Shown here piece after piece: positions 630 to 20,785 of a stretch of 64,000 nt of DNA (the first letter of the stretch is position 1; each line of letters opens with the position of its first letter). A model generated the notes under the pieces. That model made no database searches. It was not told where the DNA came from and saw only the letters and a list, made by a program, of their open reading frames with translations. The DNA lies in IMG/VR virus record IMGVR_UViG_3300036770_004143, positions 186,001 through 250,000 of that record; one strand, written 5' to 3'. Made by a program: the position numbers and the translations under genes.

Positions 630-1406
630 ATGAGAAATAGATTAAATGAGCAAGTGAATAGGTTCAAACAAATAATGAATGTCATTAGTGAGAATACAAA
701 TGATAATGTTGATTTTGTTACATTAACTGGACAAGTGATAGATCAGTTAGAAGGTGGATATTACCATCCAGATATGAGGTATAGATTAAAAGGTGATTGG
801 TCTAAGTATGGTAATTCTGGTGAAACTATGTTTGGGATTGATAGATTAAGAGGTGGTTCAATCAATACAACTTCTGCTGGTAGGGAGTTCTGGACTTTAA
901 TTGATAATGCTAATGCAAAGAATACTTGGGATTGGAATTATAAAGGTGGTCAATTGGGTGATAGGTTAAAGGTATTGGCTGCACAAATGATGAAACCACA
1001 GTTTGATTTATATATGAGGAAATATCTTACACCAGAAGCACAGAAGATTGTTAATAGTAGTAAAGCATTGACATTTAATTTCATCTATGCCACTTGGAAT
1101 GGTCCAGGTTGGTTTAAGAAGTTTGCAAATAAGTTTAATGAAGATGTTAAAAAGAATTTAAGTATTGGAGAACTTGTTGGTAAAGTTCTTGAATATAGAA
1201 GAGATAGTGGTAATAGAATTATTGTTGATACTGGAAAGAAGTTAGAGAAGATATTACCAAATATTGAAAACATTAATATTTCTCCCCTATCAACAGGTTC
1301 ATCATCAGATACAGGTATTACATCAAGTGATAATAAACAACCAGGTTTTATTGATATGTTATATGATAAGTTCTTGGCTTCACAAAAGGCATCAAATAAG
1401 GCATAG
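630..1406 (+). CDS. Putative peptidoglycan hydrolase (GH108/lysozyme-like)
   Basis: LEGGY..D and ETMFGIDR motifs recall GH108-like muramidases; start moved to ATG 630, downstream of TATTTAT (606-612). Confidence 0.45.
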   Translation: MRNRLNEQVNRFKQIMNVISENTNDNVDFVTLTGQVIDQLEGGYYHPDMRYRLKGDWSKYGNSGETMFGIDRLRGGSINTTSAGREFWTLIDNANAKNTWDWNYKGGQLGDRLKVLAAQMMKPQFDLYMRKYLTPEAQKIVNSSKALTFNFIYATWNGPGWFKKFANKFNEDVKKNLSIGELVGKVLEYRRDSGNRIIVDTGKKLEKILPNIENINISPLSTGSSSDTGITSSDNKQPGFIDMLYDKFLASQKASNKA

Positions 1407-1492
1407 AATTGCATTGTGCTTAACTTTATGATATGTTTTGCTATTGGTGCTTGTCTTTTATTATAGTGTGTCTTAAATTGCCTTAAAATAAG

Positions 1493-1525
1493 AAAACCCC
1501 CATATTGTTATATATGAGGGGTTCT
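1493..1525. terminator. Probable bidirectional intrinsic terminator
   Basis: gaaaacccccatat...atatgaggggttctt hairpin between convergent genes. Confidence 0.55.
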
Positions 1526-1546
1526 TTGTTTAAATGAAAAAAGCAA

Positions 1547-1966
1547 TTAAAGAATAATAAATCCCTTGTTAATTAAATACTCCTGGTTCTCATAATGTTT
1601 CTGGATTTGTTCCTCCCTGGTTAAATTGTGATATGATACAGCTAGTTTGTTCTGAATCAATCCCTCATTAATGTTTAACCCATCCTTTGTGAATACAGTT
1701 GCCAATAATCTACCATACTTCTCACGCTTGTCAAGCACAGTCTTTATTGTAACCTTATCCCCAACCTTTAAATTATCAAACAAATACCTTGTGGCCATAA
1801 TTGCCTGTAATCTTAATAATGGATCCTCTGATGTCATCTCTGGTGTGTCCAATCCATACAACCTAATCTTGGTCTCATTCATAAACATGTAAAAACCCAA
1901 ATCAATGTCCAGGATTAAACTGTCCCCATCAATGATTCGCTTTACTGTTGCTTTGTATTCATACAT
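1547..1966 (-). CDS. Thermonuclease (SNase-like)
   Basis: IIDGDS, IRLYGLDTPE and DKREKYGRLLA motifs; start moved to MYEYKA. Confidence 0.85.
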   Translation of the reverse strand: MYEYKATVKRIIDGDSLILDIDLGFYMFMNETKIRLYGLDTPEMTSEDPLLRLQAIMATRYLFDNLKVGDKVTIKTVLDKREKYGRLLATVFTKDGLNINEGLIQNKLAVSYHNLTREEQIQKHYENQEYLINKGFIIL

Positions 1967-2026
1967 AATCTTATAGTTTATTATAAATATGTTTAGATGC
2001 AAAAGTTTGTTTTACCTATATGGTAT

Positions 2027-3121
2027 TTAGGTGCAATTTTCATGTTTCATATTAACCTTTGTGTTTAAATATTCTTTAATTTTTTTTGTAAGCCTGTCTC
2101 TACTAACTCTCACATCTTTATTTAATTCTTTATAAATTTTATAAAAACTAACACCTTCTTCATATTGTTTAGCAGCTTTAGCTATAACCAATTCATCTAA
2201 TACAAAATGTTCAAACTCAACATTGTATTTGTTTTTTAATTTTTTTCTAATCTGTGAACCACTAAACCCAGTCTTTTTTTCAATTTCTTTAATAGTTAAA
2301 CCTTTCTGGAACATTTCAAATGCTAAAAGTATATCAGATTCTAACATATAAACTTTTGATTTATATTTATTATCAATATTAAAATTCTTTTTTAATTTAC
2401 GTGTTATTTGAGCTCTACTAAATCTAGTCTTTTTTTCAATTTCACTAAAATTAAACCCATTTTGATACATTTCAAACACCAAAAGTATATCAGATTCTGA
2501 CATGTGTTCACCTTTATATCTTTTTGGTTCTAATTTATCGTATTTAATATTTGACCATAAATAACCATATGCTATTCCACCAGTTTTACATGCTCTACTT
2601 ATTAACCTATTACATAAAGGCAAACCTAACTCTTTAATTAATAAGTTTTGAGATTCAAAAGATTTAATATAATCACCATTCAAAGAATATTGATAAGTTT
2701 CAACTGATTTGTGATTTTTCTTACCTGTTTTACCAAAAAAAGGATTTTTTTCACCTTTAAAAACACCACTCAAAAGACTTCTTTCTCTAACTTTAATACA
2801 AACTTCTTGAGTATGTTTATAACCCTTTCTAACACCATCACCACCATTTGTTTGATTTTTTAAAATGAAACCTCTTTCTTTATGTAATCTTATTTCTTCT
2901 ATTTCAGCAAAATCACCTTTATCTTTTTCTACTTCACAAATAAGTGAAATTTTTAAATCATTATAACCATATTTACTAAGCCAATTATATAATTTAGTTT
3001 TTTTATTTTTTTTAGAATTATATATATGTTGTCTAAACCTAAGTTCCAATGATTTTTCTGTTTTACCAATATAAATCACATTTGGGTTATTTTCATAAAA
3101 TATTTTATATATTTTTACCAT
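2027..3121 (-). CDS. GIY-YIG homing endonuclease with NUMOD/HTH DNA-binding modules
   Basis: N-terminal KIY...YIGKT, NQTNGGDG, KGEKNPFFGK and repeated C-terminal HTH-like units. Confidence 0.85.
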   Translation of the reverse strand: MVKIYKIFYENNPNVIYIGKTEKSLELRFRQHIYNSKKNKKTKLYNWLSKYGYNDLKISLICEVEKDKGDFAEIEEIRLHKERGFILKNQTNGGDGVRKGYKHTQEVCIKVRERSLLSGVFKGEKNPFFGKTGKKNHKSVETYQYSLNGDYIKSFESQNLLIKELGLPLCNRLISRACKTGGIAYGYLWSNIKYDKLEPKRYKGEHMSESDILLVFEMYQNGFNFSEIEKKTRFSRAQITRKLKKNFNIDNKYKSKVYMLESDILLAFEMFQKGLTIKEIEKKTGFSGSQIRKKLKNKYNVEFEHFVLDELVIAKAAKQYEEGVSFYKIYKELNKDVRVSRDRLTKKIKEYLNTKVNMKHENCT

Positions 3122-3170
3122 TTTTATAGTTTTTATGTCTTTTTTAGCAACTGAAACTTAATTGTTTTTA

Positions 3171-3437
3171 CTAGTTTAAAATATAACCACCCTCTTTAAG
3201 GATCTTTACCACCTTCTTCTCAACTGTTGTGCAAATGGCTGGTTTATTTGCAATGCTACCAAACTTACCATCAGAAAAGATAATATAATATTTCTCCTTA
3301 TTGTTATCGTAGAACCTTGTAACCTGGCAATATTCATTTTTATCATTTTTGAATATACCATAACGTTTTCCAAGCAATAACATCCATAATCTTTCCATAG
3401 TCTTTTGGTTTTGTTTATTTCTCCTGCTAAGATACAA
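3171..3437 (-). CDS. Hypothetical protein
   Basis: ORF in gene-dense run. Confidence 0.5.
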   Translation of the reverse strand: MYLSRRNKQNQKTMERLWMLLLGKRYGIFKNDKNEYCQVTRFYDNNKEKYYIIFSDGKFGSIANKPAICTTVEKKVVKILKEGGYILN

Positions 3438-3460
3438 ACTTTATCCCAAATACCAAAATA

Positions 3461-3781
3461 TCATTGGGGTTTATTTATATAATCACTATATTTCTTTGTC
3501 TGGATAATAAACATTGTTTCATTCTTTATTGGATATGTCTCCACAAACCATTTGCAATAACTAAAATCCTGCTCCAATACATCAATTATCTTCTTACCCT
3601 TATGTTTGCCAAACCAGAACATATGATCACGACTTAATTTCATTGGGATATTCTTGCTTTGTATATATGTTGATGTTTTTGAATTTGGAAATGTCCTAAC
3701 AAACCAACTACAATAGTTTATATCCTTCTGGAATACATCATCAACCATCTCCCCATTGTATTTGCCAATATAAAACTTCAT
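3461..3781 (-). CDS. Protein with two (I/F)GK(Y/H)xG repeats (ExoX C-terminal-like)
   Basis: FYIGKYNG..D..YCSWF and FWFGKHKG..D..YCKWF. Confidence 0.6.
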   Translation of the reverse strand: MKFYIGKYNGEMVDDVFQKDINYCSWFVRTFPNSKTSTYIQSKNIPMKLSRDHMFWFGKHKGKKIIDVLEQDFSYCKWFVETYPIKNETMFIIQTKKYSDYINKPQ

Positions 3782-3787
3782 ATCATT

Positions 3788-4126
3788 TTATTTATACATC
3801 TCCGGATAATCATCCATTAATTGTTTTTTAATCTTGTTTCTACCCAAATTAACCAATTCATTATAATTACCACTATCTATAATCCCAACTGATAATTGTA
3901 TGAAATCAGGCTGGGGATTGCCCAAATGTTTTATCATTGTCTCAGCAATTAAATAATTTTCTGGGGCAACCCTAAATGATATATTTGGATTATAGAATTG
4001 TTCAAAATAATGATATTTCTCATCCAGTTCCCTTATATCAATCATTTGCTCAATTTTATTTTTTAAGTAAAGCTGTTTCATATTTTTATTCGTAATAAAA
4101 TTCATCCAATATAACCTTCCAATCAT
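3788..4126 (-). CDS. Hypothetical protein (true start probably downstream)
   Basis: ORF; 5' part overlaps the neighbouring gene. Confidence 0.45.
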   Translation of the reverse strand: MIGRLYWMNFITNKNMKQLYLKNKIEQMIDIRELDEKYHYFEQFYNPNISFRVAPENYLIAETMIKHLGNPQPDFIQLSVGIIDSGNYNELVNLGRNKIKKQLMDDYPEMYK

Positions 4127-4493
4127 TTATCTGCCCATCAGAATCAATGTCCATAATAATATAATCACCCCAACCATCCTTCTTTGGAGATAACATCCTG
4201 GGAACATAATCCCTAATCTTCTTTATTAACTCCATATTGCTATCAAGAAGTTTATATGTCCCATTATCACATACCTTATAATGCGTGGTTGCCCTAACCC
4301 CCTGGGTCCAGTTTACAATCTTTCCAGTATTGATGTTTATCAATGGCTTCCAACAATCCCCATCCCTACAAGGAATGTTACCATCCTTATCCTCAATCCC
4401 ATTCATTATACCATCATCCCAGCGTCTTACACCAGCCTCAACAAACAAATACTCAATGTCAAACTCTTTTGTAACTGTGAATTTTGCTTTCAT
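4086..4493 (-). CDS. Hypothetical phage protein
   Basis: GVRRWDD, HYKVCDNG and GDYIIMDI motifs; ATGA coupling with upstream gene. Confidence 0.6.
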   Translation of the reverse strand: MKAKFTVTKEFDIEYLFVEAGVRRWDDGIMNGIEDKDGNIPCRDGDCWKPLININTGKIVNWTQGVRATTHYKVCDNGTYKLLDSNMELIKKIRDYVPRMLSPKKDGWGDYIIMDIDSDGQINDWKVILDEFYYE

Positions 4494-4699
4494 AATTTAT
4501 TGTTTTTTTTAATTTGTTTTTTAATCCCGTGATTTACACTAGAAAAGGGAATTTGTCTTTGTCCTGGATCAAAAACTATAAAATCATATATATAAGAACA
4601 TTCATAATGACTTCTATGTGTGCTAATAAGATTAACTATCTTATTGTGTGTTCCATTACTATTGAATGCTAAATTAATATTTTTTTTAATATTCTTCAT
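4490..4699 (-). CDS. MKNI-family microprotein
   Basis: MKNIKK start; array 1. Confidence 0.65.
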   Translation of the reverse strand: MKNIKKNINLAFNSNGTHNKIVNLISTHRSHYECSYIYDFIVFDPGQRQIPFSSVNHGIKKQIKKNNKL

Positions 4700-4892
4700 G
4701 TTGTTTTTCTAATTCATTTTCAATCTGACTATATAGTGTAATCTTTAATATATCTCTTACACCATTAAGAGTTTTATCACTCACACTATTATATACATTG
4801 GCTTTAAGACAATCATCTGTTCTTGTTAGAGATTTAGCCAATCTAAAAAAGTTTATCTTATCACCAATACTTGTTCTAATATTTCTCATCAT
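4686..4892 (-). CDS. MKNI-family microprotein
   Basis: MRNIRT start; array 1. Confidence 0.7.
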   Translation of the reverse strand: MMRNIRTSIGDKINFFRLAKSLTRTDDCLKANVYNSVSDKTLNGVRDILKITLYSQIENELEKQHEEY

Positions 4893-5082
4893 TCCTATTT
4901 AAATTAGTATCATTCTGGTCAAGTATTGAAGCCTTGAATACTGTTCCTCTTACACCAAGAAGAGCATATTCAACAACAATATCATATAGATCAGGCCCAA
5001 CACTATTTATTGTTTTTTGGTCATATTTATCCCACCTAATGTTGTTTAGAATATAACCAATTTTTGCATTAACATTTCTCAT
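4876..5082 (-). CDS. MKNI-family microprotein
   Basis: MRNVNA start; array 1. Confidence 0.7.
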   Translation of the reverse strand: MRNVNAKIGYILNNIRWDKYDQKTINSVGPDLYDIVVEYALLGVRGTVFKASILDQNDTNLNRNDEKY

Positions 5083-5271
5083 CTATTTGTTTTTTAAATT
5101 ATCCTCAACCTGGTCAGATATTGAAATCCTTGCTATAGCACTTACACCAATAAAAGGATTAGTTATATTGCCAATTACATTTTCCATAACGTAACCATTT
5201 ATTCTTGGCCTACACTTGTACCATCTAAAAGCATTTATCTTATCAGCAATATTTCTTTTAACATTTCTCAT
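5083..5271 (-). CDS. MKNI-family microprotein
   Basis: MRNVKR start; ends QVEDNLKNK. Confidence 0.7.
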   Translation of the reverse strand: MRNVKRNIADKINAFRWYKCRPRINGYVMENVIGNITNPFIGVSAIARISISDQVEDNLKNK

Positions 5272-5463
5272 CTATTTGTTTTTTAAATTATTCTCAACCT
5301 GGTTAAATATTGAACTCCTTAATACACCGCTTGCACCATGAATAGTAACTTCAACCACATTGGTATATACGTCAATTGCAATGTAATCATCTATTTTTAT
5401 TTTATGCATACCCCGAATAAAATCAAGTATATCATCACCAATCTTTCCTCTAAAATTTATCAT
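5272..5463 (-). CDS. MKNI-family microprotein
   Basis: MINFRG start; ends QVENNLKNK. Confidence 0.7.
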   Translation of the reverse strand: MINFRGKIGDDILDFIRGMHKIKIDDYIAIDVYTNVVEVTIHGASGVLRSSIFNQVENNLKNK

Positions 5464-5705
5464 TTTTTATAAATTAAATTATTCACCAATTCCATTTTGA
5501 CAGCAGAACTAAATTCAATTTCTCTATTAACTTTACCATTTTGTGTAGAAAGGCAAATTCTAAACATATCTCTTCCACCATCAAGATTTGAATCAATTAG
5601 ATTATGATGTATATTTTCCTCAAAGCCATTTCTATTTTGTTGTTTATACATCCTTTGTATAAAAGTAATTGTAAAATCCCTAATCACCCCTTTTTTATTT
5701 CTCAT
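5460..5705 (-). CDS. MKNI-family microprotein
   Basis: MRNKKG start; array 1. Confidence 0.65.
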   Translation of the reverse strand: MRNKKGVIRDFTITFIQRMYKQQNRNGFEENIHHNLIDSNLDGGRDMFRICLSTQNGKVNREIEFSSAVKMELVNNLIYKK

Positions 5706-5913
5706 AGTTTAATTTGTTTTCAATCACATTACGTACCTCATAACCACTTTGAATTAGAAATATAATTGAAAAATTTACTTTATCTTTCATACTCTGATGA
5801 ACAGTGTTAGTTACTTTATCATTATCTCCAAGAACAACAGATGTGTTTGCTGTAAATTTATTGTGTCTTAAATAATTCATACATTCACTAACACTTGTTC
5901 TAATATTCTTCAT
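5695..5913 (-). CDS. MKNI-family microprotein
   Basis: MKNIRT start; array 1. Confidence 0.7.
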   Translation of the reverse strand: MKNIRTSVSECMNYLRHNKFTANTSVVLGDNDKVTNTVHQSMKDKVNFSIIFLIQSGYEVRNVIENKLNYEK

Positions 5914-6097
5914 AGTTTAATTTCTTTTTTAAATTATTTTCAATATGAGAATAAACCTGATCTGTTATCTGCATTTCTATATTATAAGATATCATATCCC
6001 CTATCTTACGCCAAGATTTTTGCATAGTGTGATTTGACACTATGTCTAACATTTCAGCACGTAATTTGGCTTGACCTCCAATCTTAATCTTTTTCAT
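5900..6097 (-). CDS. MKNI-family microprotein
   Basis: MKKIKI start; ends IENNLKKK. Confidence 0.7.
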   Translation of the reverse strand: MKKIKIGGQAKLRAEMLDIVSNHTMQKSWRKIGDMISYNIEMQITDQVYSHIENNLKKKLNYEEY

Positions 6098-6098
6098 A

Positions 6099-6281
6099 TT
6101 ATTTTTCTAATTTATTTTCAATCTCCTTACACACATCATAAGTAGATTCAATTTTTTTAATGTCATTAGAAATATCCCAAGTACAACCCCAGGCAACACC
6201 ATTTATACGATTAATTGTAATTACAAACATAGCAGCATCAACTCTAGTACGTAAATTAACCTTTTTACTAATATTTTTCAT
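6099..6281 (-). CDS. MKNI-family microprotein
   Basis: Start moved to MKNISK; ends IENKLEK. Confidence 0.7.
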   Translation of the reverse strand: MKNISKKVNLRTRVDAAMFVITINRINGVAWGCTWDISNDIKKIESTYDVCKEIENKLEK

Positions 6282-6489
6282 ATATTTGGGTTTTAAGACG
6301 GTCAAGAACCTGGATTATTATATCCTCTTCTATATCAAAGGATCTATCAAGAAGCTGGTATATTACATCCTCTTTTGAATTAAAAGATTTAACTGAAATA
6401 GAAGTCCCAACACAATCAAATACTTTATTTGAAATTTTGTCATGGGTATTACTAAATTTTGCTCCAATTGTGTAATGAATATTCTTCAT
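6268..6489 (-). CDS. MKNI-family microprotein
   Basis: MKNIHY start; array 1. Confidence 0.7.
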   Translation of the reverse strand: MKNIHYTIGAKFSNTHDKISNKVFDCVGTSISVKSFNSKEDVIYQLLDRSFDIEEDIIIQVLDRLKTQIYEKY

Positions 6490-6671
6490 TCTATTTGTTT
6501 TTTTACTTTTTCTACAACCTCTCTATATAAAGGTAAAGTTCTTAACCAAACTACTGAAAAAATAACATTGTTTGCACAATCATAAGTCTTGTGTTCAACA
6601 CAGTCAACTGCATTATTTAATCTTTTCCTATAGGGAAAATTAAAACTAATATCATACTTTATATTATTCAT
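6486..6671 (-). CDS. MKNI-family microprotein
   Basis: MNNIKY start; array 1. Confidence 0.7.
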   Translation of the reverse strand: MNNIKYDISFNFPYRKRLNNAVDCVEHKTYDCANNVIFSVVWLRTLPLYREVVEKVKKQIE

Positions 6672-6852
6672 TGTTGCCTATTATTAAATTATTTTCAACT
6701 TCAAGCCAGTGAACATCACTATTTTCTTTATACATTTTACTTCTTATTTTAACTTCTAAATTAGAGCATAATTTATTGGACACCCTAGCCTGTAACCTCT
6801 CCTGGAATATACTCCATATATCATCTAATTTTTTTTCAAAAATGTTCTCCAT
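6664..6852 (-). CDS. MKNI-family microprotein
   Basis: MENIFE start; array 1. Confidence 0.7.
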   Translation of the reverse strand: MENIFEKKLDDIWSIFQERLQARVSNKLCSNLEVKIRSKMYKENSDVHWLEVENNLIIGNNE

Positions 6853-7042
6853 AATTATGTTTTTTTAAATTATTTAAAGTCTGAAAATACACCTGGTTCT
6901 CTGTCTGAGCCAATATATTGAAAAATGCCTTATCCCTTATCTTATCTTCCAAAAGATAATTTACTTTCTTGGACAACTTAGCCAGTAAATGCTCCCAAAT
7001 CATATCCCATTTCTGAAAATTCTTTACACCAATGTTCTCCAT
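6836..7042 (-). CDS. MKNI-family microprotein
   Basis: MENIGV start; array 1. Confidence 0.7.
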   Translation of the reverse strand: MENIGVKNFQKWDMIWEHLLAKLSKKVNYLLEDKIRDKAFFNILAQTENQVYFQTLNNLKKHNYGEHF

Positions 7043-7044
7043 GA

Positions 7045-7227
7045 TTATTTTTTTACGTTATTTTTAATAAGTGAATAAAACTGGTGACTTACCTCAACTA
7101 GCATATTATCATAAACCCTACCCATTATATTTTGTAAACAGAAATCCATTTTCTTATATACCTTTATATTTAAAGGCGAATGTAATTTGTTAGTTATTTT
7201 CAAATCAATTTTACTAATATTTATCAT
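7045..7227 (-). CDS. MKNI-family microprotein
   Basis: MINISK start; array 1. Confidence 0.7.
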   Translation of the reverse strand: MINISKIDLKITNKLHSPLNIKVYKKMDFCLQNIMGRVYDNMLVEVSHQFYSLIKNNVKK

Positions 7228-7399
7228 ATATTGTATGTTTTACATTGTTTAAGATAGTTTTTGTGTTTTCATAAATTGAGTTTATTTTCTCATCTGTTAT
7301 TTTATTCTTTATATCCTGATCAAAAAATACTGTTTTATATGCCATCTTTTGTGTAAAAGAAACCCCCCTATCTGCCAATATGTATTTAATATTTTTCAT
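7214..7399 (-). CDS. MKNI-family microprotein
   Basis: MKNIKY start; array 1. Confidence 0.7.
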   Translation of the reverse strand: MKNIKYILADRGVSFTQKMAYKTVFFDQDIKNKITDEKINSIYENTKTILNNVKHTIYDKY

Positions 7400-7587
7400 T
7401 TATTTTTTTTTAATTTACTACCAATCACCAAACAAACTGGTAAACTTGTTTGCGTAAATAATAGTCTGTTAATAGGGCTATTACTCCTACTGGTTCTATC
7501 CCAGGCATAACCCACAACATAATCAAATAACTTATATAAGATTTTACCACGTGTTTTTATATCAATTTCATGACTAATATTCCTCAT
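7396..7587 (-). CDS. MKNI-family microprotein
   Basis: MRNISH start; array 1. Confidence 0.7.
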   Translation of the reverse strand: MRNISHEIDIKTRGKILYKLFDYVVGYAWDRTSRSNSPINRLLFTQTSLPVCLVIGSKLKKNK

Positions 7588-7798
7588 CTACGTTAATATT
7601 TAAGACCTCTATATTATTCCAGCCATTATTCAAAACATCCCAGTATATTGGGTGTTTCACTTCCATATTAAGATTACGACTAACAGCATTATTTATTATA
7701 CCACGAATATAACTAGCAACATGATAAGATATTTTATCCGAAGTGTCATTACGCTTAGTATTAACCCTATTACCAATTATAGAGTTAACCCTCTTCAT
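7574..7798 (-). CDS. MKNI-family microprotein
   Basis: MKRVNS start; array 1. Confidence 0.7.
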   Translation of the reverse strand: MKRVNSIIGNRVNTKRNDTSDKISYHVASYIRGIINNAVSRNLNMEVKHPIYWDVLNNGWNNIEVLNINVDEEY

Positions 7799-7980
7799 AA
7801 CTTTACATTTTGTTTTACTTGTTTCACTACCCTATCCCTTACTTTATTAGATACCTTATCACTTACTTTATTACATACCTTATCACTTAATTCATTACAT
7901 ACTTCATTACTTACTTTAACTCCAAAACTAATTCTCCTCTTGTACAACTTTTCATGAATCTGATTAGAAAAACTGTTCAT
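7795..7980 (-). CDS. MKNI-family microprotein with 4-residue V-x-(D/N)-K repeats
   Basis: VSNEVCNELSDKVCNKVSDKVSNKVRDRVVKQV. Confidence 0.7.
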   Translation of the reverse strand: MNSFSNQIHEKLYKRRISFGVKVSNEVCNELSDKVCNKVSDKVSNKVRDRVVKQVKQNVKL

Positions 7981-8168
7981 AACTTTACATTTAGTTTTAC
8001 TTGATTCACTCCTTGATTCATTATTTTATTGCTTATCACTCCTTCATCCCCTGCTTTAGCCCTTACTGTAAGCCTAACATTATCACTAACTTTATCCCAC
8101 GCTTCATCACCCAAACCAATTCTCATCTTATATAATGTAAAATGAATCTGATTACAAATATTTTTCAT
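7977..8168 (-). CDS. MKNI-family microprotein
   Basis: MKNICNQIH start; close paralog of 7795-7980. Confidence 0.7.
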   Translation of the reverse strand: MKNICNQIHFTLYKMRIGLGDEAWDKVSDNVRLTVRAKAGDEGVISNKIMNQGVNQVKLNVKL

Positions 8169-8497
8169 AAATTCATTTTTTCAATAAATGGATTTAGGTT
8201 ATTCCCCTGGACTTCTGGAATAAAGTATTGCACCTTATCATAATGCCAAACTTCTTTCCCAGTTATATCATCATAATAAACCTCAATTGGTTTTGTTGAA
8301 TGGGTGATTTTATGACAATAATCCAAATGAATTTGGCTGCCATCCCTAAATATAAATTGCTCATTATAATATTCAATAACTTGACAAATCTCTTCAACTT
8401 CAATCTCGGAGCAATACACATAAACCCAATCACCTATTTCAATATCCAAATCATCCACAATGATGTAATGATCTTCACTAATATTCACTAGTCGCAT
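8165..8497 (-). CDS. Hypothetical protein
   Basis: ORF; shares IEIGD..Y/CHKI motifs with 9066-9983. Confidence 0.55.
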   Translation of the reverse strand: MRLVNISEDHYIIVDDLDIEIGDWVYVYCSEIEVEEICQVIEYYNEQFIFRDGSQIHLDYCHKITHSTKPIEVYYDDITGKEVWHYDKVQYFIPEVQGNNLNPFIEKMNL

Positions 8498-8502: not shown

Positions 8503-8730
8503 TTAGTTTTTTTGTTTGTAAGATTGACCAAATGTCCTGGGGAGAGTATTAACCAACTGCTGAATTTCATCAGGCTCTAACTCAATTGTTACCCCATTTT
8601 TAATTATAATCATTTTTAAACCTTCTGTCCAGTGAGAATATTCAAAAAGACCATCTGTATTGCATATAGAATATGAAAAAACATTGAACTCTGTTGAGGT
8701 GGGGGTAATGGTTTCATTAAGTTGTTTCAT
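8503..8730 (-). CDS. Hypothetical protein
   Basis: Start moved to MKQLNE. Confidence 0.5.
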   Translation of the reverse strand: MKQLNETITPTSTEFNVFSYSICNTDGLFEYSHWTEGLKMIIIKNGVTIELEPDEIQQLVNTLPRTFGQSYKQKN

Positions 8731-9064
8731 CTTGTTTAGTTTTTTTAAATTGATTAAACCACTCTTGTAAAATTTCCTCTGCTGATTTATTAGAATTTTG
8801 CATTGTTGAGTTAAATTCTTCTTGAAAATAAAAATGTGCAAAACTAATCAAATCTTCCTCACTATACATCTGTTCTTGTTGCCATTTCGCGCCTTTTTTA
8901 AATGCTTCTTTTGTTAGCCAATTACCAACGTTTACCCCCAAAAGGTAAGGATTGAAGTCTATATAAATATTTTTAGCAGCCTCATCAACTGTTTCTTTTT
9001 TAGGAAGACATTCTTTGTTACAAATACCTTCGCAATACATACAACCTCTAGCTATATAGTTCAT
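8717..9064 (-). CDS. Hypothetical protein (ETVxxAA...GAxWQQExMYSEE family)
   Basis: Motif shared with 9066-9983; start moved to MNYIAR. Confidence 0.55.
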   Translation of the reverse strand: MNYIARGCMYCEGICNKECLPKKETVDEAAKNIYIDFNPYLLGVNVGNWLTKEAFKKGAKWQQEQMYSEEDLISFAHFYFQEEFNSTMQNSNKSAEEILQEWFNQFKKTKQDETT

Positions 9065-9065
9065 T

Positions 9066-9983
9066 TTATTTCTTTTTAAATTGTTCAATAATGGTTTCAC
9101 AATCACTTAAATATTTACCACAATGACCTTTATCTTTGTAGGTGTATTTAAGATGATTTATTTCTGAAATACTACGTTTAAGCATCTCTAGTAAATCATT
9201 AACTTCTTCCTCACTATACATTCTCTCTTGCATCCATTCAGCACCTTCAATAAATCCTATTTTATGTGCATAAGGATTTAATCCATTTTTATATTCTGAA
9301 TTTATTTTATCCCAGTTATTTTCAGCAGCATCTTCAACCGTTTCTTGTTTACGTTTCATCATAATAGAATTAGATATTCTTTCTTCCTTCTTTGCTGATT
9401 CTGTGTATGTGAGTTTTTCTTGTTTAGGTTTACCACCAAACAAACCAGATGCTAAGTCATTAAACTCTTTTGTTCCAATTTTTGGTAATCCAAAATATTC
9501 TAAATTTAATTGTTTAGGTTCTTTTTTTGGAATAATTATTTTGTATTCCTTATGGAAAGTTGGATAACTTGTATGTCCTGCAAATCCAACATAATCTTCT
9601 ACTTCAATTTCTCTAACCTCAACCTCCTCACAACTTGGATTATTAACAAACCATTCTAAAAACTCATCATCAATAGCTTGAACATGGTCTTTAATCAAGT
9701 CTTGGTCTGTGGTTAGGATGATTTTTTTACATAGTTCATATCTATCATAATAACCTAAACGATATTCAGCAAAAAAATATTCATCACCATTTTTATAGAT
9801 AATTAAATCCCCTTCTATAATTTCTTCATCATTAGTGATGTATAGGTGTTGATTTTCGCTATCCAAAATGTTAGGCATAACCCTATCAAATAACCTTAAA
9901 TCATTAAAGACTTGCTTACCTTTTTTAGTTAGATATCCTAACCTACTTGGTTTATCTGTTGGAATTATGTGTATGTTTTTCAT
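9066..9983 (-). CDS. Hypothetical mosaic protein
   Basis: 305 aa ORF containing the ETVEDAA..GAEWMQERMYSEE module. Confidence 0.65.
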   Translation of the reverse strand: MKNIHIIPTDKPSRLGYLTKKGKQVFNDLRLFDRVMPNILDSENQHLYITNDEEIIEGDLIIYKNGDEYFFAEYRLGYYDRYELCKKIILTTDQDLIKDHVQAIDDEFLEWFVNNPSCEEVEVREIEVEDYVGFAGHTSYPTFHKEYKIIIPKKEPKQLNLEYFGLPKIGTKEFNDLASGLFGGKPKQEKLTYTESAKKEERISNSIMMKRKQETVEDAAENNWDKINSEYKNGLNPYAHKIGFIEGAEWMQERMYSEEEVNDLLEMLKRSISEINHLKYTYKDKGHCGKYLSDCETIIEQFKKK

Positions 9984-12453: not shown

Positions 12454-12651
12454 TTAAAAATTATGCTTCAACATAGTCTTTTTTACATTTGGTTCTAAAT
12501 TTTGATATAATTGACCAATAATCTGTTCAAAAACTTCCCCTTCTGCTTGAATAAGCACTTTATTACTTATTTGAAGAATACTTTTTTTAACTACATAGGT
12601 AGTTACTTTATCTCCTAATTCTTTAGATATTTTCTGGCTTACACTATTCAT
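12454..12651 (-). CDS. MKNI-family microprotein
   Basis: Start moved to MNSVSQ. Confidence 0.65.
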   Translation of the reverse strand: MNSVSQKISKELGDKVTTYVVKKSILQISNKVLIQAEGEVFEQIIGQLYQNLEPNVKKTMLKHNF

Positions 12652-12800
12652 AATTTTAGGTTGTTTTGTATTTGAAACCATAGTTGACCATTTGTTTGAA
12701 CCTCTCCTACTCTAAGTATTTTTTTTCTTAATTGCATATTTGGTTTATCATGTACAAAATAACCCACTTGCATATACACTTTATCTATTACATTTTTCAT
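12648..12800 (-). CDS. MKNI-family microprotein (50 aa, not in track)
   Basis: MKNVIDKVYMQV...QIQNNLKL; ATGA overlaps at both ends. Confidence 0.7.
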   Translation of the reverse strand: MKNVIDKVYMQVGYFVHDKPNMQLRKKILRVGEVQTNGQLWFQIQNNLKL

Positions 12801-12970
12801 ACTTTAAATTTTAAGTTTGCTTTCATTTGCATAGATACTTGTTGGCTAACTTGCCTCCATACCTGATGATATACTTGATGCCTAGCATTATTAACCACTG
12901 GTACCCGTGCATGTTTATTCCATCTTGGATACTGGACTTTAGCTTCTATTTCATGACCTACATTTCTCAT
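12797..12970 (-). CDS. MKNI-family microprotein (57 aa, not in track)
   Basis: MRNVGHEI...QVYHQVWRQVSQQVSMQMKANLKFKV. Confidence 0.7.
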   Translation of the reverse strand: MRNVGHEIEAKVQYPRWNKHARVPVVNNARHQVYHQVWRQVSQQVSMQMKANLKFKV

Positions 12971-13140
12971 ACTTTAAATTTTAGGTTTTCTTTTATTTGA
13001 ATAGATACTTGTTGATGAACTTGTGTCCAAGGTCGTAGATATACTTTATCCCTAATATGATGAACCACTTGTATTGATATGGGAGTAATGGATCGTGGGT
13101 TTTGTATTTTATTTCCAATTTTACTAGCCACATTTTTCAT
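12967..13140 (-). CDS. MKNI-family microprotein (57 aa, not in track)
   Basis: MKNVASKI...QVHQQVSIQIKENLKFKV. Confidence 0.7.
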   Translation of the reverse strand: MKNVASKIGNKIQNPRSITPISIQVVHHIRDKVYLRPWTQVHQQVSIQIKENLKFKV

Positions 13141-13307
13141 GCTTTTAATCTTTTTTCTATTTTGGAAAACAATTCTTGAAGTGTTTGATTACCAAATTGG
13201 GGGTAATCATAGTATTCAATAGTTATTTGTTTACGTAATTCTTTACGTAATACAAAATTAACTTTCATACCTATATGTTTCCGTATTTTATCATCTACAT
13301 TTTTCAT
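13137..13307 (-). CDS. MKNI-family microprotein
   Basis: Start moved to MKNVDD. Confidence 0.65.
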   Translation of the reverse strand: MKNVDDKIRKHIGMKVNFVLRKELRKQITIEYYDYPQFGNQTLQELFSKIEKRLKA

Positions 13308-13311
13308 GCTT

Positions 13312-13698
13312 TTAATTTTTTTCAAAATAAAAAACTATATCAATCTCATTCTCCTGGACAAGACCATAACGTTTTGCAATTTTATATTGGGTTGATTTCT
13401 CATTTAGATGTTTCATGAACCCTTTAATCAAAGACCTAAACTCTTCCAAAGATAATGAATGTTTATTAATATTGCAACTTGGACAGCTTGGATTTTGATT
13501 TTCAATTGTTAATCGTTCTGGATGCTGCATAGGATTATCTTTATCTATCACAAATTTCTTCTTAACTTTGTCATATATATGATTTCTTTTAACAGGTTCT
13601 ATTTCGTCAATGTGCCAACCTTTCTCTAACTTATCACCACAATAACAACATCTACCATTGCATTTTTCAAACAACAAATCTCTAACTTTCTTACTCAT
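13312..13698 (-). CDS. HNH endonuclease
   Basis: CNGRCCYCG, WHIDEIEP, NQNPSCPSCNINK; start moved to MSKKVR. Confidence 0.85.
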   Translation of the reverse strand: MSKKVRDLLFEKCNGRCCYCGDKLEKGWHIDEIEPVKRNHIYDKVKKKFVIDKDNPMQHPERLTIENQNPSCPSCNINKHSLSLEEFRSLIKGFMKHLNEKSTQYKIAKRYGLVQENEIDIVFYFEKN

Positions 13699-13865
13699 AA
13701 AATTATCTTTGGCAAGTTTCTTAATTTTAGGTTGATTATTCCTTGCATATAAGCCCCCATCCAAACATTACCAGGAAGATATTCTTTTATTTTTATTACA
13801 CCCTTTAAATTTCTTAGAGTTTCATCATGCACTTGATTCAAAATTATAGTTCTTATACTTTTCAT
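13695..13865 (-). CDS. MKNI-family microprotein (56 aa, not in track)
   Basis: MKSIRTIILNQVHDE...NLKLRNLPKIIL. Confidence 0.7.
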   Translation of the reverse strand: MKSIRTIILNQVHDETLRNLKGVIKIKEYLPGNVWMGAYMQGIINLKLRNLPKIIL

Positions 13866-14032
13866 AAAATTATCTTTGGCAAATTTCTTAATTTTAGGTT
13901 TATTGTCACTCGACTATTAAACCACCTAAACTGATTACCAGGTAGGTATTCTTTTTCTTCTATTGTATCCTTTAACTTAACTTCAATTTCATCATACACT
14001 TGATTCAAAATTTCAATTCTTACACTTTTCAT
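13862..14032 (-). CDS. MKNI-family microprotein (56 aa, not in track)
   Basis: MKSVRIEILNQVYDE...NLKLRNLPKIIL; recent duplicate of 13695-13865. Confidence 0.7.
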   Translation of the reverse strand: MKSVRIEILNQVYDEIEVKLKDTIEEKEYLPGNQFRWFNSRVTINLKLRNLPKIIL

Positions 14033-14379
14033 AATATTATAGATTTAACTTTATACCATATTTGTTTACCTATGACACTTATTAAGCGACGACCAGTACG
14101 TAGATATGATAACTTTGTATCAACTTTAAAATCAACTCTATAACTAACATTATCAGTTTTAGTGTGAAAAACATTAACCTGTATTTTAGTAAATTTACTA
14201 TTTACCACACTTGAAATATTTCTCATTGTTAGCATTTGATTTGTTGTTTTATGATATAGTTCTGTCCAGATTTTATGGCGCAATCTACTAAATAAAGTTT
14301 CATAACTTCCATTCCAAATTGGGATTCTAATTTCATTTACTAATTTATCTTTTGTTTCTTGCCCAATATTTTTCATCAC
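14029..14379 (-). CDS. Fused double MKNI-family unit
   Basis: MKNIGQ... followed in frame by an internal MRNISS... Confidence 0.65.
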   Translation of the reverse strand: MMKNIGQETKDKLVNEIRIPIWNGSYETLFSRLRHKIWTELYHKTTNQMLTMRNISSVVNSKFTKIQVNVFHTKTDNVSYRVDFKVDTKLSYLRTGRRLISVIGKQIWYKVKSIIL

Positions 14380-14564
14380 TTAAACATTATTTTTATTCTA
14401 AGATTATCTGTAAAATTATGTGTCATTTGCTTAAATATTTGGTCATTTATTATTTCTCGATATCTAATATGATATGCAGGATTAATAGTTGGAATTAAGT
14501 TAAGTCTTTCTAACTTCTCTATTGATGAAATTTTCTTTGTGATTTTACTGTTCACTCTTTCCAT
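14376..14564 (-). CDS. MKNI-family microprotein
   Basis: MERVNS start. Confidence 0.65.
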   Translation of the reverse strand: MERVNSKITKKISSIEKLERLNLIPTINPAYHIRYREIINDQIFKQMTHNFTDNLRIKIMFK

Positions 14565-14776
14565 TTCTTAATTTTAAGTTTTTTTGGATTATCTATTTCA
14601 AGCCACACCTGGTCTCTTATTGGTAAGAAAACTTGTCCGTATATACCATCCTCTACCTTATCCCACATAATTTTCCATAATCTATCACCAATATTTGTGG
14701 CAGCATTTTGTTTTATGTTAGAATTTACACCATCATATATCATCACATCAAATATGTTTCTACTAATGTTCTTCAT
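14552..14776 (-). CDS. MKNI-family microprotein
   Basis: MKNISR start; contains IRDQVW. Confidence 0.7.
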   Translation of the reverse strand: MKNISRNIFDVMIYDGVNSNIKQNAATNIGDRLWKIMWDKVEDGIYGQVFLPIRDQVWLEIDNPKKLKIKKWKE

Positions 14777-14969
14777 AGTTTAATTTATTCTTTATTTGGG
14801 TAATTAATTTTTCTGCAATATTATTATCCACCTGCAACCAAGAAGGATCCCATAATTTAACTGTAAGTTTAGTATATATTTTCCATCCTTTGTCAAATAT
14901 AGCATTATCAGCCTTCATCCTATATTGGTCATATATTTTACGTAATATAAATTCATTAATATTCTTCAT
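14763..14969 (-). CDS. MKNI-family microprotein
   Basis: MKNINE start; paralog of 14956-15162. Confidence 0.7.
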   Translation of the reverse strand: MKNINEFILRKIYDQYRMKADNAIFDKGWKIYTKLTVKLWDPSWLQVDNNIAEKLITQIKNKLNYEEH

Positions 14970-15162
14970 GTTTTAATTTATTTTTCACTTGCATAACTAC
15001 ATTATTAGTCACGTTATTCTCCACCTGAAGCCAAGCAACATCCCACAACTTATTTCCAATATTAGCATATATGTTGTATCCTTTGTCATTAATAATATCA
15101 TTGACCTTTTCCCTATGTTGCTTATATATTTGATAAATTATTTGTTTATCAATATTCTTCAT
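14956..15162 (-). CDS. MKNI-family microprotein
   Basis: MKNIDK start; shares KLWD..WLQV.NN. Confidence 0.7.
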   Translation of the reverse strand: MKNIDKQIIYQIYKQHREKVNDIINDKGYNIYANIGNKLWDVAWLQVENNVTNNVVMQVKNKLKHEEY

Positions 15163-15168
15163 GTTTTG

Positions 15169-15348
15169 TCATTTTAATTTTCTAACTTGTTGAATAACAT
15201 TATTTGTTAACCAATGAAAACGGCTTATTTGTATAAATTTACTATTCATGTTAGTTTTAAGATACATACTATATGATATATCTTTTGTAACTTTCTCCTT
15301 AATCTTTAAATGTATTTTCCACACTATTAAGTCCCCAATGTTATCCAT
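15169..15348 (-). CDS. MKNI-family microprotein (59 aa, not in track)
   Basis: MDNIGDLIVWKI...NNVIQQVRKLK. Confidence 0.65.
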   Translation of the reverse strand: MDNIGDLIVWKIHLKIKEKVTKDISYSMYLKTNMNSKFIQISRFHWLTNNVIQQVRKLK

Positions 15349-15538
15349 GTTTAAAATTATTTTTCATATTAGGAAATAAATTTTTGATTATGTTATAATA
15401 TGCAATGTTATCTACCTGATTTTTTGATTCATCCATAATAGGTGCAGCTTGAAACCATGCTTTCTCATACTTCTTACCAGGATAAATTTTATCAATATAT
15501 AATCCTTTTGAAGTTATAACTCTGGAAACATTCTTCAT
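15341..15538 (-). CDS. MKNI-family microprotein
   Basis: MKNVSR start. Confidence 0.7.
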   Translation of the reverse strand: MKNVSRVITSKGLYIDKIYPGKKYEKAWFQAAPIMDESKNQVDNIAYYNIIKNLFPNMKNNFKHG

Positions 15539-15544
15539 TCTTGT

Positions 15545-15730
15545 TTATTTTAAAATGGTTTCTTTAATCAATGGTGGTTGTGCATTAGTTATCTGATTAC
15601 GAACCTCACTATTTAATTTGAGGTGAATCCTATACATTGTATCCATACTCCAAAAACTCACAAGCGTAGGTGTACGATATTTAACTAAATAATTAATTTG
15701 ATTATGGATATGTTGTTTAACATTCTTCAT
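15545..15730 (-). CDS. MKNI-family microprotein
   Basis: MKNVKQ start. Confidence 0.7.
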   Translation of the reverse strand: MKNVKQHIHNQINYLVKYRTPTLVSFWSMDTMYRIHLKLNSEVRNQITNAQPPLIKETILK

Positions 15731-15731
15731 T

Positions 15732-15926
15732 TTATTTATTTTTTCTAATTAAAAACCTAACAATAGGTATGCAGGGCATTTTATTCTGTATCTGCTCTAA
15801 CATCTCCTCAAATTCTAAATCACTTTTACGCCTCAAATATTTATTTACTTTATAATCAATAAATGCTTCATTATTTGTATTTAAAATATCAATTTGTTTT
15901 GTTATTTTTGAACCAACGTTTTTCAT
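15732..15926 (-). CDS. MKNI-family microprotein
   Basis: MKNVGS start. Confidence 0.7.
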   Translation of the reverse strand: MKNVGSKITKQIDILNTNNEAFIDYKVNKYLRRKSDLEFEEMLEQIQNKMPCIPIVRFLIRKNK

Positions 15927-15985: not shown

Positions 15986-16372
15986 TTAGTCAATAACCCT
16001 TTTCTTCATATTCTCCAAAGGATCAAACCTTGTCTGGATTCCAGCATAGTATTTGCCTGGTGGAACAATAGTGTGTCTGTGGTCTTTTTTAGGCGTAATA
16101 ACAGCCGTATCCATAGAAACACCAGATCCTAATAGTTCTGACTGTAATGAGTGGTTTAGAATACACTCATCATGAGCCTCAATAAGAAATCCCCCATCTG
16201 GGTATTCATAAATGTCATAGTTACCAAATAAGGCATGGAAACTACCTGACCTTTCTGATGCAGCAATAAATTGCTTTTGCACCTTTTTAACATCACTAGG
16301 GAGTTCAGTTAATCCAAAGAACTGGACATCACCTTGGTGGAAAGAAATGTTGGAAAAATTTAATTTACTCAT
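15986..16372 (-). CDS. Conserved protein (HQGDV...H family), usual neighbour of DUF6745-type genes
   Basis: FHQGDV, GSFHAL and HRHTIVPPGKY motifs. Confidence 0.55.
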   Translation of the reverse strand: MSKLNFSNISFHQGDVQFFGLTELPSDVKKVQKQFIAASERSGSFHALFGNYDIYEYPDGGFLIEAHDECILNHSLQSELLGSGVSMDTAVITPKKDHRHTIVPPGKYYAGIQTRFDPLENMKKRVID

Positions 16373-20325: not shown

Positions 20326-20339
20326 AGTTGTTTTGTTTG

Positions 20340-20413
20340 TAATCCTGGTTGGATTTGAACCAACGATCCCCTAATTAAAAGTTAGGTGCTTTAAACCACT
20401 AAGCTACAGGATT
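20340..20413 (-). tRNA. tRNA-Lys(TTT)
   Basis: Cloverleaf; anticodon arm cctaa-CTTTTAA-ttagg. Confidence 0.9.
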
Positions 20414-20423
20414 ATTAAAAATT

Positions 20424-20496: not shown

Positions 20497-20504
20497 TTTA
20501 AAAA

Positions 20505-20700: not shown

Positions 20701-20708
20701 ATCTTTTG

Positions 20709-20778: not shown

Positions 20779-20785
20779 ATAATTG

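Follow-up and report, generated by a model that had tools for sequence, protein, structure and literature searches.

A run of small genes in a jumbo phage

What is encoded by a run of very small, back-to-back genes in a jumbo phage genome, and why are there so many of them? We addressed this question in a 64,000-nt stretch of IMG/VR record IMGVR_UViG_3300036770_004143 (positions 186,001–250,000; hereafter the window). A preliminary description made from the sequence alone had noted 19 tandem ORFs of 60–81 aa at 4490–8168 (array 1), with conserved starts, basic C-termini and very divergent cores, and had proposed an accordion-like library of short amphipathic helices acting as host-takeover or anti-defence inhibitors under diversifying selection. 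The observation itself was confirmed; the interpretation was supported only in part.

All 19 ORFs are present on the minus strand. ORFs of at least 55 aa covered 99.9% of the region, compared with a mean of 3.1% (maximum 20%) in 2000 first-order Markov simulations, which had a mean of 0.58 such ORFs (maximum 4). Spacing between units was −17 to +2 nt, and both flanking genes (8165–8497 and 4086–4493) were joined to the array by 4-nt ATGA overlaps. The tight coupling of the whole block suggests that it is probably one polycistronic message. The N-terminal consensus was MKNI and the C-terminal consensus Q..NNLK. The near-identical block reported at two gene junctions is real, and longer than first described: 5070–5114 and 5259–5303 were identical at 44 of 45 positions, and 5069–5149 and 5258–5338 at 71 of 81.

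We next asked whether the units form one family, a condition on which the preliminary description had staked its reading, and found that they mostly do. In leave-one-out profile tests, 11 of 19 units scored E < 1e-3, above every shuffled decoy; four were marginal (E of 0.002–0.04), and four (a01, a06, a09 and a15) had no independent support. The units are listed below in order of transcription, all on the minus strand, with their leave-one-out E-values.

7977–8168 (−), a19, 63 aa, first transcribed unit, ATGA-coupled to the upstream gene 8165–8497; ends in QVKLNVKL, like free-standing perfect-repeat microproteins of other phages (E 1.6e-4)
7795–7980 (−), a18, 61 aa, clearest period-4 repeat of the array (shuffle z = 5.0); absent from relative L085 (E 4.8e-8)
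7574–7798 (−), a17, 74 aa (E 0.0023, marginal; period-4 z 3.6)
7396–7587 (−), a16, 63 aa (E 0.04, marginal)
7214–7399 (−), a15, 61 aa, member by position, size and MKNI start only (E 0.13, not independently supported)
7045–7227 (−), a14, 60 aa (E 1.1e-5)
6836–7042 (−), a13, 68 aa (E 6.9e-10)
6664–6852 (−), a12, 62 aa (E 0.011, marginal)
6486–6671 (−), a11, 61 aa; relatives L085 and L086 carry an extra or alternative a11-like unit next to it (E 0.0026, marginal)
6268–6489 (−), a10, 73 aa (E 1.2e-5; period-4 z 4.1)
6099–6281 (−), a09, 60 aa from the internal ATG at 6281, a more likely start than the TTG at 6305 given in the ORF list because its orthologue in L085 starts there; duplicated in L086 (E 2.8, not independently supported)
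5900–6097 (−), a08, 65 aa (E 8.8e-8)
5695–5913 (−), a07, 72 aa; absent from L086 (E 1.4e-4)
5460–5705 (−), a06, 81 aa, the longest; absent from relatives L082 and L083 (E 6.3, not independently supported)
5272–5463 (−), a05, 63 aa; absent from L082 (E 4.5e-8)
5083–5271 (−), a04, 62 aa; its junction with a05 is nearly identical to the a03/a04 junction (E 1.2e-9)
4876–5082 (−), a03, 68 aa (E 3e-6)
4686–4892 (−), a02, 68 aa, used for structure and complex prediction (E 3.2e-7)
4490–4699 (−), a01, 69 aa, last unit, ATGA-coupled to the downstream gene 4086–4493 (E 0.6, not independently supported)

The family extends beyond array 1, with 28–29 members in the genome. The other features of interest are as follows.

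12454–15926 (−), array 2 of the same family, directly downstream of the DUF6745 gene and its neighbor; nine units have profile support (12454, 12648, 12797, 12967, 14029, 14552, 14763, 14956 and 15545), more qualify by position only, and the array is interrupted by an HNH-like ORF
15986–16372 (−), a 128-aa gene, probably part of the module; a gene of this size (124–130 aa) follows DUF6745 in six of the loci we retrieved, and its product in L093 is visibly similar in sequence
16398–17357 (−), the phage's only DUF6745 (PF20530) gene, about 319 aa from the second in-frame ATG, lacking the tetrapeptide-repeat insert of close homologues; the proposed core partner of the microproteins
29098–29286 (−), a lone family member, 62 aa (E 4.6e-4)

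Degenerate tetrapeptide repeats and their link to DUF6745

The divergent cores turned out not to be arbitrary: they are degenerate tetrapeptide repeats, with V/I/L at every fourth residue. The observed-over-expected autocorrelation of V/I/L was 1.82, 1.44 and 1.30 at lags 4, 8 and 12, compared with about 1.0 in other small ORFs and in long genes. All 19 units had a positive signal (z > 0), and eight were individually significant (p < 0.05).

An exhaustive search with a profile of the family gave 272 hits (E < 1e-3, down to 5e-37). Of ten larger hits sampled for Pfam, nine (including the five best) were DUF6745 proteins, and wherever sequences were read the matched stretches fell in the (V-x-x-x)n repeat insert of these 350–570-aa proteins. 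A profile dominated by period-4 hydrophobic residues can match any period-4 repeat, so the apparent homology could in principle reflect convergence; the genomic complementarity described below argues against this but does not prove descent. Intermediates exist in the form of free-standing microproteins with an MKNV start, near-perfect QVxx repeats and a QVKQNVKL end. The DUF6745 protein of the window lacks the insert, whereas homologues that are 52%–58% identical carry one of roughly 120–240 aa at the same site, between the N-terminal part and the W-L-x-F-Y core. The units are separate ORFs, and hence a split variant of the fused architecture.

We then compared 62 viral loci. Of 24 loci with a repeat-less DUF6745 gene, 17 had at least three free-standing repeat microgenes within 10 kb, compared with none of 38 loci with a repeat-bearing gene (Fisher p = 4.7e-10). 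Of the seven repeat-less loci with fewer than three microgenes, at least one is a truncated contig: loci L117 and L118 encode identical cores, but only L118, with its longer flanks, shows microgenes. The pattern held in lineages with different repeat chemistry and GC content, including QVxx, SVxx, QLxx and KVxx. The core tree required at least 6–9 independent switches; in independent pairs, three to four went the expected way and none the opposite way, although this test was underpowered (median p = 0.125). In the window, the single DUF6745 gene is on the same strand as both arrays, but array 1 lies 8–13 kb downstream rather than next to it.

Predicted structure and predicted complex

AF2 predicted a02 to be one long helix (residues 5–67, pLDDT 87.5). 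The complex of a02 with the DUF6745 core scored an ipSAE of 0.81 in all three runs, compared with 0.00 for the best of three controls; that mark was reached by 58 of 80 solved complexes and two of 110 mismatched pairs. The predicted interface covered core residues 64–75 and 79–105, on both sides of the insert site, and nearly the whole microprotein. The score is the model's own confidence, and was obtained with alignments that we built ourselves. The core had no recognizable fold or catalytic motif.

These results bear on the reading in the preliminary description, in which each microprotein is an autonomous inhibitor of a host process or defense system, with no obligate partner in the phage. 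The units are indeed small, helical and often basic. However, the units are genetically tied to a repeat-less DUF6745 core gene and are predicted to bind it; neither the strict complementarity nor the confident, control-specific predicted complex is expected for autonomous inhibitors. The microproteins had no significant hit in PHROGs or PADLOC. The core and its 128-aa neighbor had no hit in PADLOC, NCBIfam or PHROGs, and in Pfam the core matched only PF20530 and the neighbor matched nothing. We consider the autonomous-inhibitor model doubtful, though an anti-defense role as such remains plausible, only by analogy with Tweety gp54.

Turnover and selection

Whole units are gained and lost among close relatives and within natural populations, supporting the accordion-like behavior proposed earlier. 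The proposed duplication of stop/start units is also supported. One minor variant skips 6497 to 7403, close to the 3′ ends of a11 and a16, which would remove a11–a15. The metatranscriptome signal was thin and could be carried-over DNA.

Diversifying selection, in contrast, is not shown. When pooled, dN/dS was significantly below 1, and the pooled value was below 1 in every comparison (0.55–0.88; 0.55 over 499 synonymous and 2231 nonsynonymous sites against L085), compared with 0.22–0.33 in three of the four pooled flank sets and 0.74 in the fourth (L089). This is relaxed constraint. Single units exceeded 1 (a19, 1.97; a05, 2.59; a07, 1.29), but these values rest on only one to five synonymous changes.

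Weak constraint raises the possibility that the array is a decaying by-product, in which a DUF6745 insert was broken up by slippage and stop/start insertion and the pieces drift with little or no function, only the junction being maintained as a translation or regulatory signal. The far greater degeneracy of the array 1 repeats compared with other phages, the dN/dS relative to the flanks, and the loss of detectable family signal in four units are in line with this. On the other hand, all 19 frames, and every orthologous unit in five related contigs that differ by 2%–40% in protein sequence, remain open in a 28% GC sequence where stops are frequent. Moreover, the split architecture arose or persisted in at least six lineages, and the period-4 hydrophobic pattern is kept at the protein level across different codon compositions. 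We regard decay as unlikely.

The conserved junctions also serve as the translation-initiation region of the next unit. In locus L129 the LEEE tail encodes GGAGGAGGAG 3 nt before the ATG, and locus L144 has GAGGTGA. The window has an A-rich tail in a genome without Shine-Dalgarno use (nine of 216 genes, against a 6.4% background). The basic C-termini are therefore at least partly a nucleotide-level constraint.

The conserved N-terminus, the most conserved protein feature, could alternatively be a capsid-targeting leader, with the units packaged and injected like T4 internal proteins and DUF6745 as a virion-associated protein. T4-type internal protein loci are hypervariable, with only a conserved leader, and in one 47-kb phage (L096) the fused DUF6745 gene sits between the large terminase and the portal. 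Yet on present evidence there is no identified prohead-protease cleavage motif, and the arrays of the window sit among small, nonstructural-looking genes, tRNAs, a methylase and a ligase. The N-terminal motif differs between lineages, and within an array it is conserved together with the preceding tail as one nucleotide block, which fits a duplication and initiation unit. The N-terminus is also part of the predicted interface with the core. We consider this reading very unlikely.

A proposed split of one protein into a core and many helices

The explanation we favor, with moderate confidence, is that the microproteins are the detached form of the (V/I/L-x-x-x)n segment that most DUF6745 phage proteins carry as an internal insert between their N-terminal helical part and their core. 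In this view, the jumbo phage encodes the repeat module as about 28 separate, diverged genes, each about 15 repeats long, with a family-specific MKNI start and Q..NNLK tail. Each microprotein would dock in trans as one long helix on the N-terminal/central helical surface of DUF6745, around the site where the insert sits in fused homologues, pairing one constant core with a library of alternative, interchangeable helices. Our analysis establishes the gain and loss of whole units, the dual use of the junctions, and the tight coupling of the block. That units come and go by recombination between the conserved junctions is inferred, as are translation and the docking mechanism, which rest on sequence and models rather than direct evidence. 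By analogy only, the most likely role is a variable host-interaction or counter-defense module, which would be tuned by repeat number in fused homologues and by the choice of helix here. Atlas lists cyanobacterial proteins that carry both DUF6745 and leucine-rich repeats, a classical binding module.

Comparison with known systems

Among the closest known systems are the repeat-bearing DUF6745 proteins of phages (for example, P0001, P0002, P0005, P0010 and P0173 in our searches), which share the repeat chemistry of a hydrophobic V/I/L at every fourth residue with polar, W, R, G, D or N residues between. They differ in that here the strongly degenerated repeats are spread over about 28 genes, each with its own start, tail and translation-initiation region. 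No paper in the literature library searched mentions DUF6745, and no function is known for any member.

Free-standing arrays of 50–90-aa genes beside short, repeat-less DUF6745 genes in other viral contigs (L091, L093, L144, L135, L115, L129 and L121) have the same architecture, with lineage-specific conserved starts and tails and period-4 cores; L093 is a fairly close relative of the window's phage. Their cores are still near-perfect repeats, whereas array 1 is highly degenerate, larger (19 units) and further from the core gene. None of these arrays is annotated or described.

The nearest functional analogue is mycobacteriophage Tweety gp54, a counter-defense protein built of an N-domain, a variable number of tetrapeptide repeats and a C-domain (PMC2884959; PMC9262239). 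Its repeat content differs between related phages, and changes in repeat number tune escape from a prophage defense. It is not homologous: the repeat is A-A-x-x rather than V-x-x-x, gp54 had no PF20530 hit, hhalign against the DUF6745 alignment gave a probability of 0.1, and neither the window's DUF6745 nor P0005 matched phrog_3416, which covers the gp54 N- and C-terminal domains. It is also a single fused gene, with no microgene arrays.

Finally, gene accordions and tandem paralogue expansions in large viruses, such as poxvirus K3L amplification, share the copy-number change of whole units between close relatives and within populations. The paralogues here are mostly 13%–40% identical, with only the a03/a04/a05 junctions near-identical, suggestive of a long-standing diversified family rather than a recent amplification of one gene.

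Genomic setting

The window, bases 186001-250000, belongs to a 270,075-bp IMG/VR virus record that is estimated to be 90% complete. This is a jumbo phage. It is about 30% GC, most ORFs of 100 aa or more lie on the minus strand, and it holds eight tRNA genes. The same phage, 99.98% identical over 20 kb and carrying an identical array, occurs in two other IMG/VR contigs, and at least 17 DNA metagenome runs hold 61-99% of the sequence words of the array. These runs come from subsurface, freshwater, wastewater and runoff samples dated 2019-2025. A comparison of the array with GenBank phages at the DNA level gave no match.

Genes in this genome do not use Shine-Dalgarno sites: GGAG or GAGG occurs upstream of 9 of 216 genes, against a background of 6.4%, whereas positions -15 to -3 are 55-70% A, against 36.5% overall. 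This pattern is typical of Bacteroidota and their phages, and points to a host among the Bacteroidota.

Several other genes in the window were noted:
9066-9983 and 8717-9106: the 305-aa protein just upstream of array 1, a member of a very widespread viral family (313 confirmed stretches in IMG/VR) without a Pfam domain, and next to it a partial paralogue that shares a C-terminal region
3788-4126: a 112-aa gene just downstream of the array region
20339-26715: a cluster of eight tRNA genes (Lys, Gln, Cys, His, Arg, Tyr, Thr, Leu)
19408-20325: a C-5 cytosine DNA methyltransferase gene, next to the tRNA cluster
42338-43357: an RNA ligase with a PHA02142 OB-fold domain, a homologue of which lies in the same neighbourhood as the DUF6745 module (see below) in the related contigs L093 and L094
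60807-63263: a 350-aa protein with EF-hand and dockerin-type calcium-binding motifs, next to a 459-aa protein with DUF5661 and HD domains

None of the 77 viral loci that share the 305-aa gene holds members of the microprotein family, so that gene is not linked to the arrays. The downstream 135-aa gene was found only in the same phage. The 112-aa gene is absent from the related contig L082, so gene-level indels in this region are not confined to the array.

A family of tandem microgenes

The preliminary description of nineteen tandem paralogs is correct. Nineteen minus-strand ORFs of 60-81 aa (units a01-a19) fill 4490-8168, spaced -17 to +2 nt apart, and both flanking genes are joined to the array by ATGA overlaps. 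ORFs of at least 55 aa cover 99.9% of the stretch, compared to a mean of 3.1% and a maximum of 20% in 2000 composition-matched simulations. The consensus is MKNI at the start and Q..NNLK near the end. The near-identical block that had been described across gene junctions is real, with 44/45 identical positions, extending to 71/81.

A profile built from the 19 units and iterated over all ORFs of the genome converged on 29 members, with no shuffled decoy below E = 1e-3. Leave-one-out tests were more sober: 11 of the 19 units were clearly significant, four were marginal, and four (a01, a06, a09 and a15) are members only by position, size and start. The members are distributed as follows:
4490-8168, minus strand: array 1, 19 units
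12454-15926: array 2, directly downstream of the DUF6745 gene pair, with nine units that have profile support and several more that qualify by position
29098-29286: a lone gene

The repeats of array 2 are better preserved than those of array 1 (for example QVYHQVWRQVSQQV). At 13312-13764 and 13695-14032, array 2 is interrupted by a 150-aa ORF with a weak HNH-endonuclease match (E 1e-3, below Pfam's cut-off) and by two 56-aa paralogues that share an ...INLKLRNLPKIIL tail, which may represent a homing-endonuclease insertion.

The cores are degenerate tetrapeptide repeats

The cores, which had been called very divergent, are not random. V, I or L recurs every fourth residue, with an observed over expected ratio of 1.82 at lag 4, 1.44 at lag 8 and 1.30 at lag 12, whereas other small ORFs and long genes of the same genome gave about 1.0. 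An exhaustive profile search of 1.84 billion representative proteins returned 272 hits at E < 1e-3. Most of the listed hits are 350-570 aa proteins matched in several stretches, and of the ten larger hits scanned against Pfam, nine, including the five best, carry DUF6745 (PF20530). In the hits whose sequences were read, the matched stretches fall in a long run of tetrapeptide repeats such as VWDQ-VRDQ or VGDK-VWAK. The hits also include free-standing microproteins from other viral contigs, with an MKNV/MKNI start, near-perfect QVxx repeats and a QVKQNVKL end, which bridge the fused repeats and units a18/a19 of this array. The repeat regions of two fused proteins (P0005 and P0002) gave sub-threshold matches to the NCBIfam gas-vesicle protein GvpQ (E 3e-8 and 7e-9; 34-36 bits against a cut-off of 100) and also matched phage tape-measure PHROGs; these matches are probably repeat or low-complexity artefacts.

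A repeat-less DUF6745 gene in the same genome

The proposed partner of the microproteins and its neighbor are located as follows:
16398-17357: the DUF6745 gene, the only one in the genome
15986-16372: a gene for a 128-aa protein that follows it

Aligned with homologues, the DUF6745 protein lacks the repeat insert. Proteins elsewhere that are 52-58% identical carry roughly 120-240 residues of repeat at exactly that point, between the LDSP..C motif and the W-L-S-F-Y motif. A gene of 124-130 aa follows DUF6745 in the window and in six other fetched loci, whether the DUF6745 gene is fused or split, although only the L093 product was seen to be similar in sequence to the 128-aa protein of the window. 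It is probably a third component of the module. In a 47-kb phage (L096, positions 936-6021), the fused 550-aa DUF6745 gene and its 124-aa partner sit between the large terminase and the portal gene, an unusual, moron-like position.

Fused and split forms are complementary across lineages

We fetched 80 viral loci with a DUF6745 relative, classified the 62 complete genes by whether they carry an internal period-4 run, and counted free-standing ORFs of at most 130 aa, within 10 kb, that carry the repeat or match the profile. At least three such microgenes were found in 17 of the 24 loci with a repeat-less DUF6745 gene and in 0 of the 38 loci with a repeat-bearing gene (Fisher p = 4.7e-10). At least one repeat-less case without an array is a truncated contig: L117 and L118 encode identical cores, but only the longer-flanked L118 shows microgenes.

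The arrays occur in very different lineages, each with its own start, tail and repeat chemistry: MINVKNK...QVWNTRND; MKSVHKQI...SHEISS; MNFTKPI with QLxx repeats; MKNKVGE...; and, in a GC-rich phage, MIDPGPCV...DSLEEEL. On a tree of the core with the repeat columns masked, the fused/split state changes at least 6 times on well-supported branches and 9 times on the best tree. In phylogenetically independent pairs the arrays follow the repeat-less state 3-4 times and never the reverse, although this sign test is underpowered (median p = 0.125).

Predicted structure and binding

Unit a02, modelled with the family alignment, is predicted to form one continuous helix from residue 5 to 67 (pLDDT 87.5). 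The DUF6745 core gave a confident model (pLDDT 92.6, pTM 0.80) but has no solved relative by sequence profile (E at least 0.058), Foldseek (best E 0.1) or VIA-align (best Z 5.2), so no activity could be inferred. The core plus a02 scored ipSAE 0.81, 0.81 and 0.80, whereas all three controls (two unrelated partners of similar size, and an unrelated protein in place of the core) scored 0.00. In the calibration of the method, that mark was reached by 58 of 80 solved complexes and 2 of 110 mismatched pairs. The predicted interface uses almost the whole microprotein and, on the core, residues 1-26, 47-53, 64-75, 79, 82-105 and 109-138, which include both flanks of the insert site. This supports binding but does not show it.

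Conserved junctions carry initiation signals

Within each lineage, the tail of one unit and the start of the next form one conserved nucleotide block that carries the host-appropriate initiation signal. In L129, another viral contig with an array, the LEEE tail encodes GGAGGAGGAG, which ends 3 nt before the ATG; a further such contig, L144, has GAGGTGA; and the window has AAT-AAT-TTA-AAA-AAA-type tails, which give the A-rich leader this genome uses. So the basic C-termini noted in the preliminary description are at least partly a translational constraint. The same junctions would be the natural substrate for unequal recombination. A purely nucleotide-level repeat, that is, a regulatory element with incidental ORFs, was rejected, since the frames stay open in relatives and the period-4 hydrophobic pattern holds across lineages with different codon composition.

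Turnover, selection and expression

Five contigs from related phages are 84-93% identical in nucleotide sequence over the main aligned blocks and keep every orthologous frame open, but differ by whole units. L085 lacks a18 and has an extra unit between a11 and a10; L086 lacks a07 and has two a09 copies; L083 lacks a06 and joins an a11-type end directly to a08; and L082 lacks a05 and a06. Minor population variants with junction-to-junction deletions were also observed. One metagenome (run X4) holds a variant that skips 6497 to 7403, close to the 3' ends of a11 and a16, which would remove a11-a15, and a metatranscriptome (run X18) holds joints at 7711-8062 that remove most of a18.

Pooled dN/dS for the array is 0.55-0.88, whereas the four pooled flank sets give 0.22-0.33 and, for L089 (one of the contigs compared), 0.74. 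This is weak purifying selection with relaxed constraint. Values above 1 for single units rest on very few substitutions, so the diversifying selection proposed earlier is not shown.

One freshwater metatranscriptome contains only eight short contigs spread over the array, seven of them at least 99% identical. Depth is low and DNA carry-over cannot be excluded, and we do not accept these contigs as proof of transcription. Scans for sigma-70 promoters and intrinsic terminators showed no enrichment and are uninformative for this host type. No terminator-like sites interrupt the array beyond chance, which, together with the tight coupling, fits one polycistronic block.

Interpretation

We interpret the array, which is more interesting than first proposed, as the split form of the hypervariable repeat module of a widespread, uncharacterized phage protein family. 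The analysis itself establishes that the ORFs are real, that most units form one family with a period-4 repeat and a profile link to DUF6745 repeats, that the core in this phage is repeat-less, that fused and split forms are complementary across lineages, that whole units turn over, and that the junctions carry initiation signals. Descent from a fused insert is inferred, as are binding in trans to the core, which is supported by one controlled prediction, and a variable host-interaction or counter-defence role, which rests on analogy only. The earlier interpretation, an expanded library of short helices acting as host-takeover or anti-defence inhibitors under diversifying selection, is supported in part.

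Arrays of tiny unannotated genes are common in large phages and are usually written off as ORFan noise or assumed to be independent inhibitors. Here the array can be tied to a specific partner gene and to a specific segment of a widespread but uncharacterized viral protein family. This gives the microproteins a testable molecular role, the predicted binding of the DUF6745 core, and gives DUF6745 its first functional handle, a constant core with a hypervariable helical module that is either fused or split. It also shows a recurrent evolutionary switch between an internal repeat and a multigene library.

A bolder reading, which we consider possible but doubtful, is a system of one core and many helices, in which the DUF6745 protein is a constant effector or scaffold and each of about 28 genome-encoded microproteins docks on it as an exchangeable specificity-determining helix. 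The phage would then carry a hard-wired combinatorial library, functionally equivalent to the repeat-number tuning of fused homologues and of the mycobacteriophage protein Tweety gp54, and used to recognize or neutralize variable host targets such as defence proteins. In this view, fission of an internal low-complexity repeat into an array of independently translated microgenes would be a previously undescribed route to protein diversification in viruses, one that would have recurred in at least six lineages.

Comparison with known systems

No paper in the literature searched mentions DUF6745, and searches on tetrapeptide repeats returned only the Tweety work as relevant. The microproteins have no significant match among PHROGs or PADLOC families. 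The core and its 128-aa neighbor match no NCBIfam, PADLOC or PHROGs family, and in Pfam only the core's own DUF entry.

The closest described system is Tweety gp54, which has unique N- and C-terminal parts flanking 40-48 A-A-x-x tetrapeptide repeats. Repeat content differs between related phages, and defence-escape mutants change the repeat number to neutralize a prophage (p)ppGpp-synthetase defence (PMC2884959, PMC9262239). We considered gp54 as a homologue of DUF6745 and rejected it; the resemblance is architectural only, and gp54 is kept as an analogue. If the analogy holds, the module described here would be a broadly distributed, tunable counter-defence architecture in environmental phages.

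Atlas clusters show that DUF6745 is mostly viral. One cluster of cyanobacterial proteins of about 680 aa combines DUF6745 with leucine-rich repeats, which may be a cellular version in which a different repeat type supplies the variable module, and which fits the idea of a constant core joined to a variable binding module.
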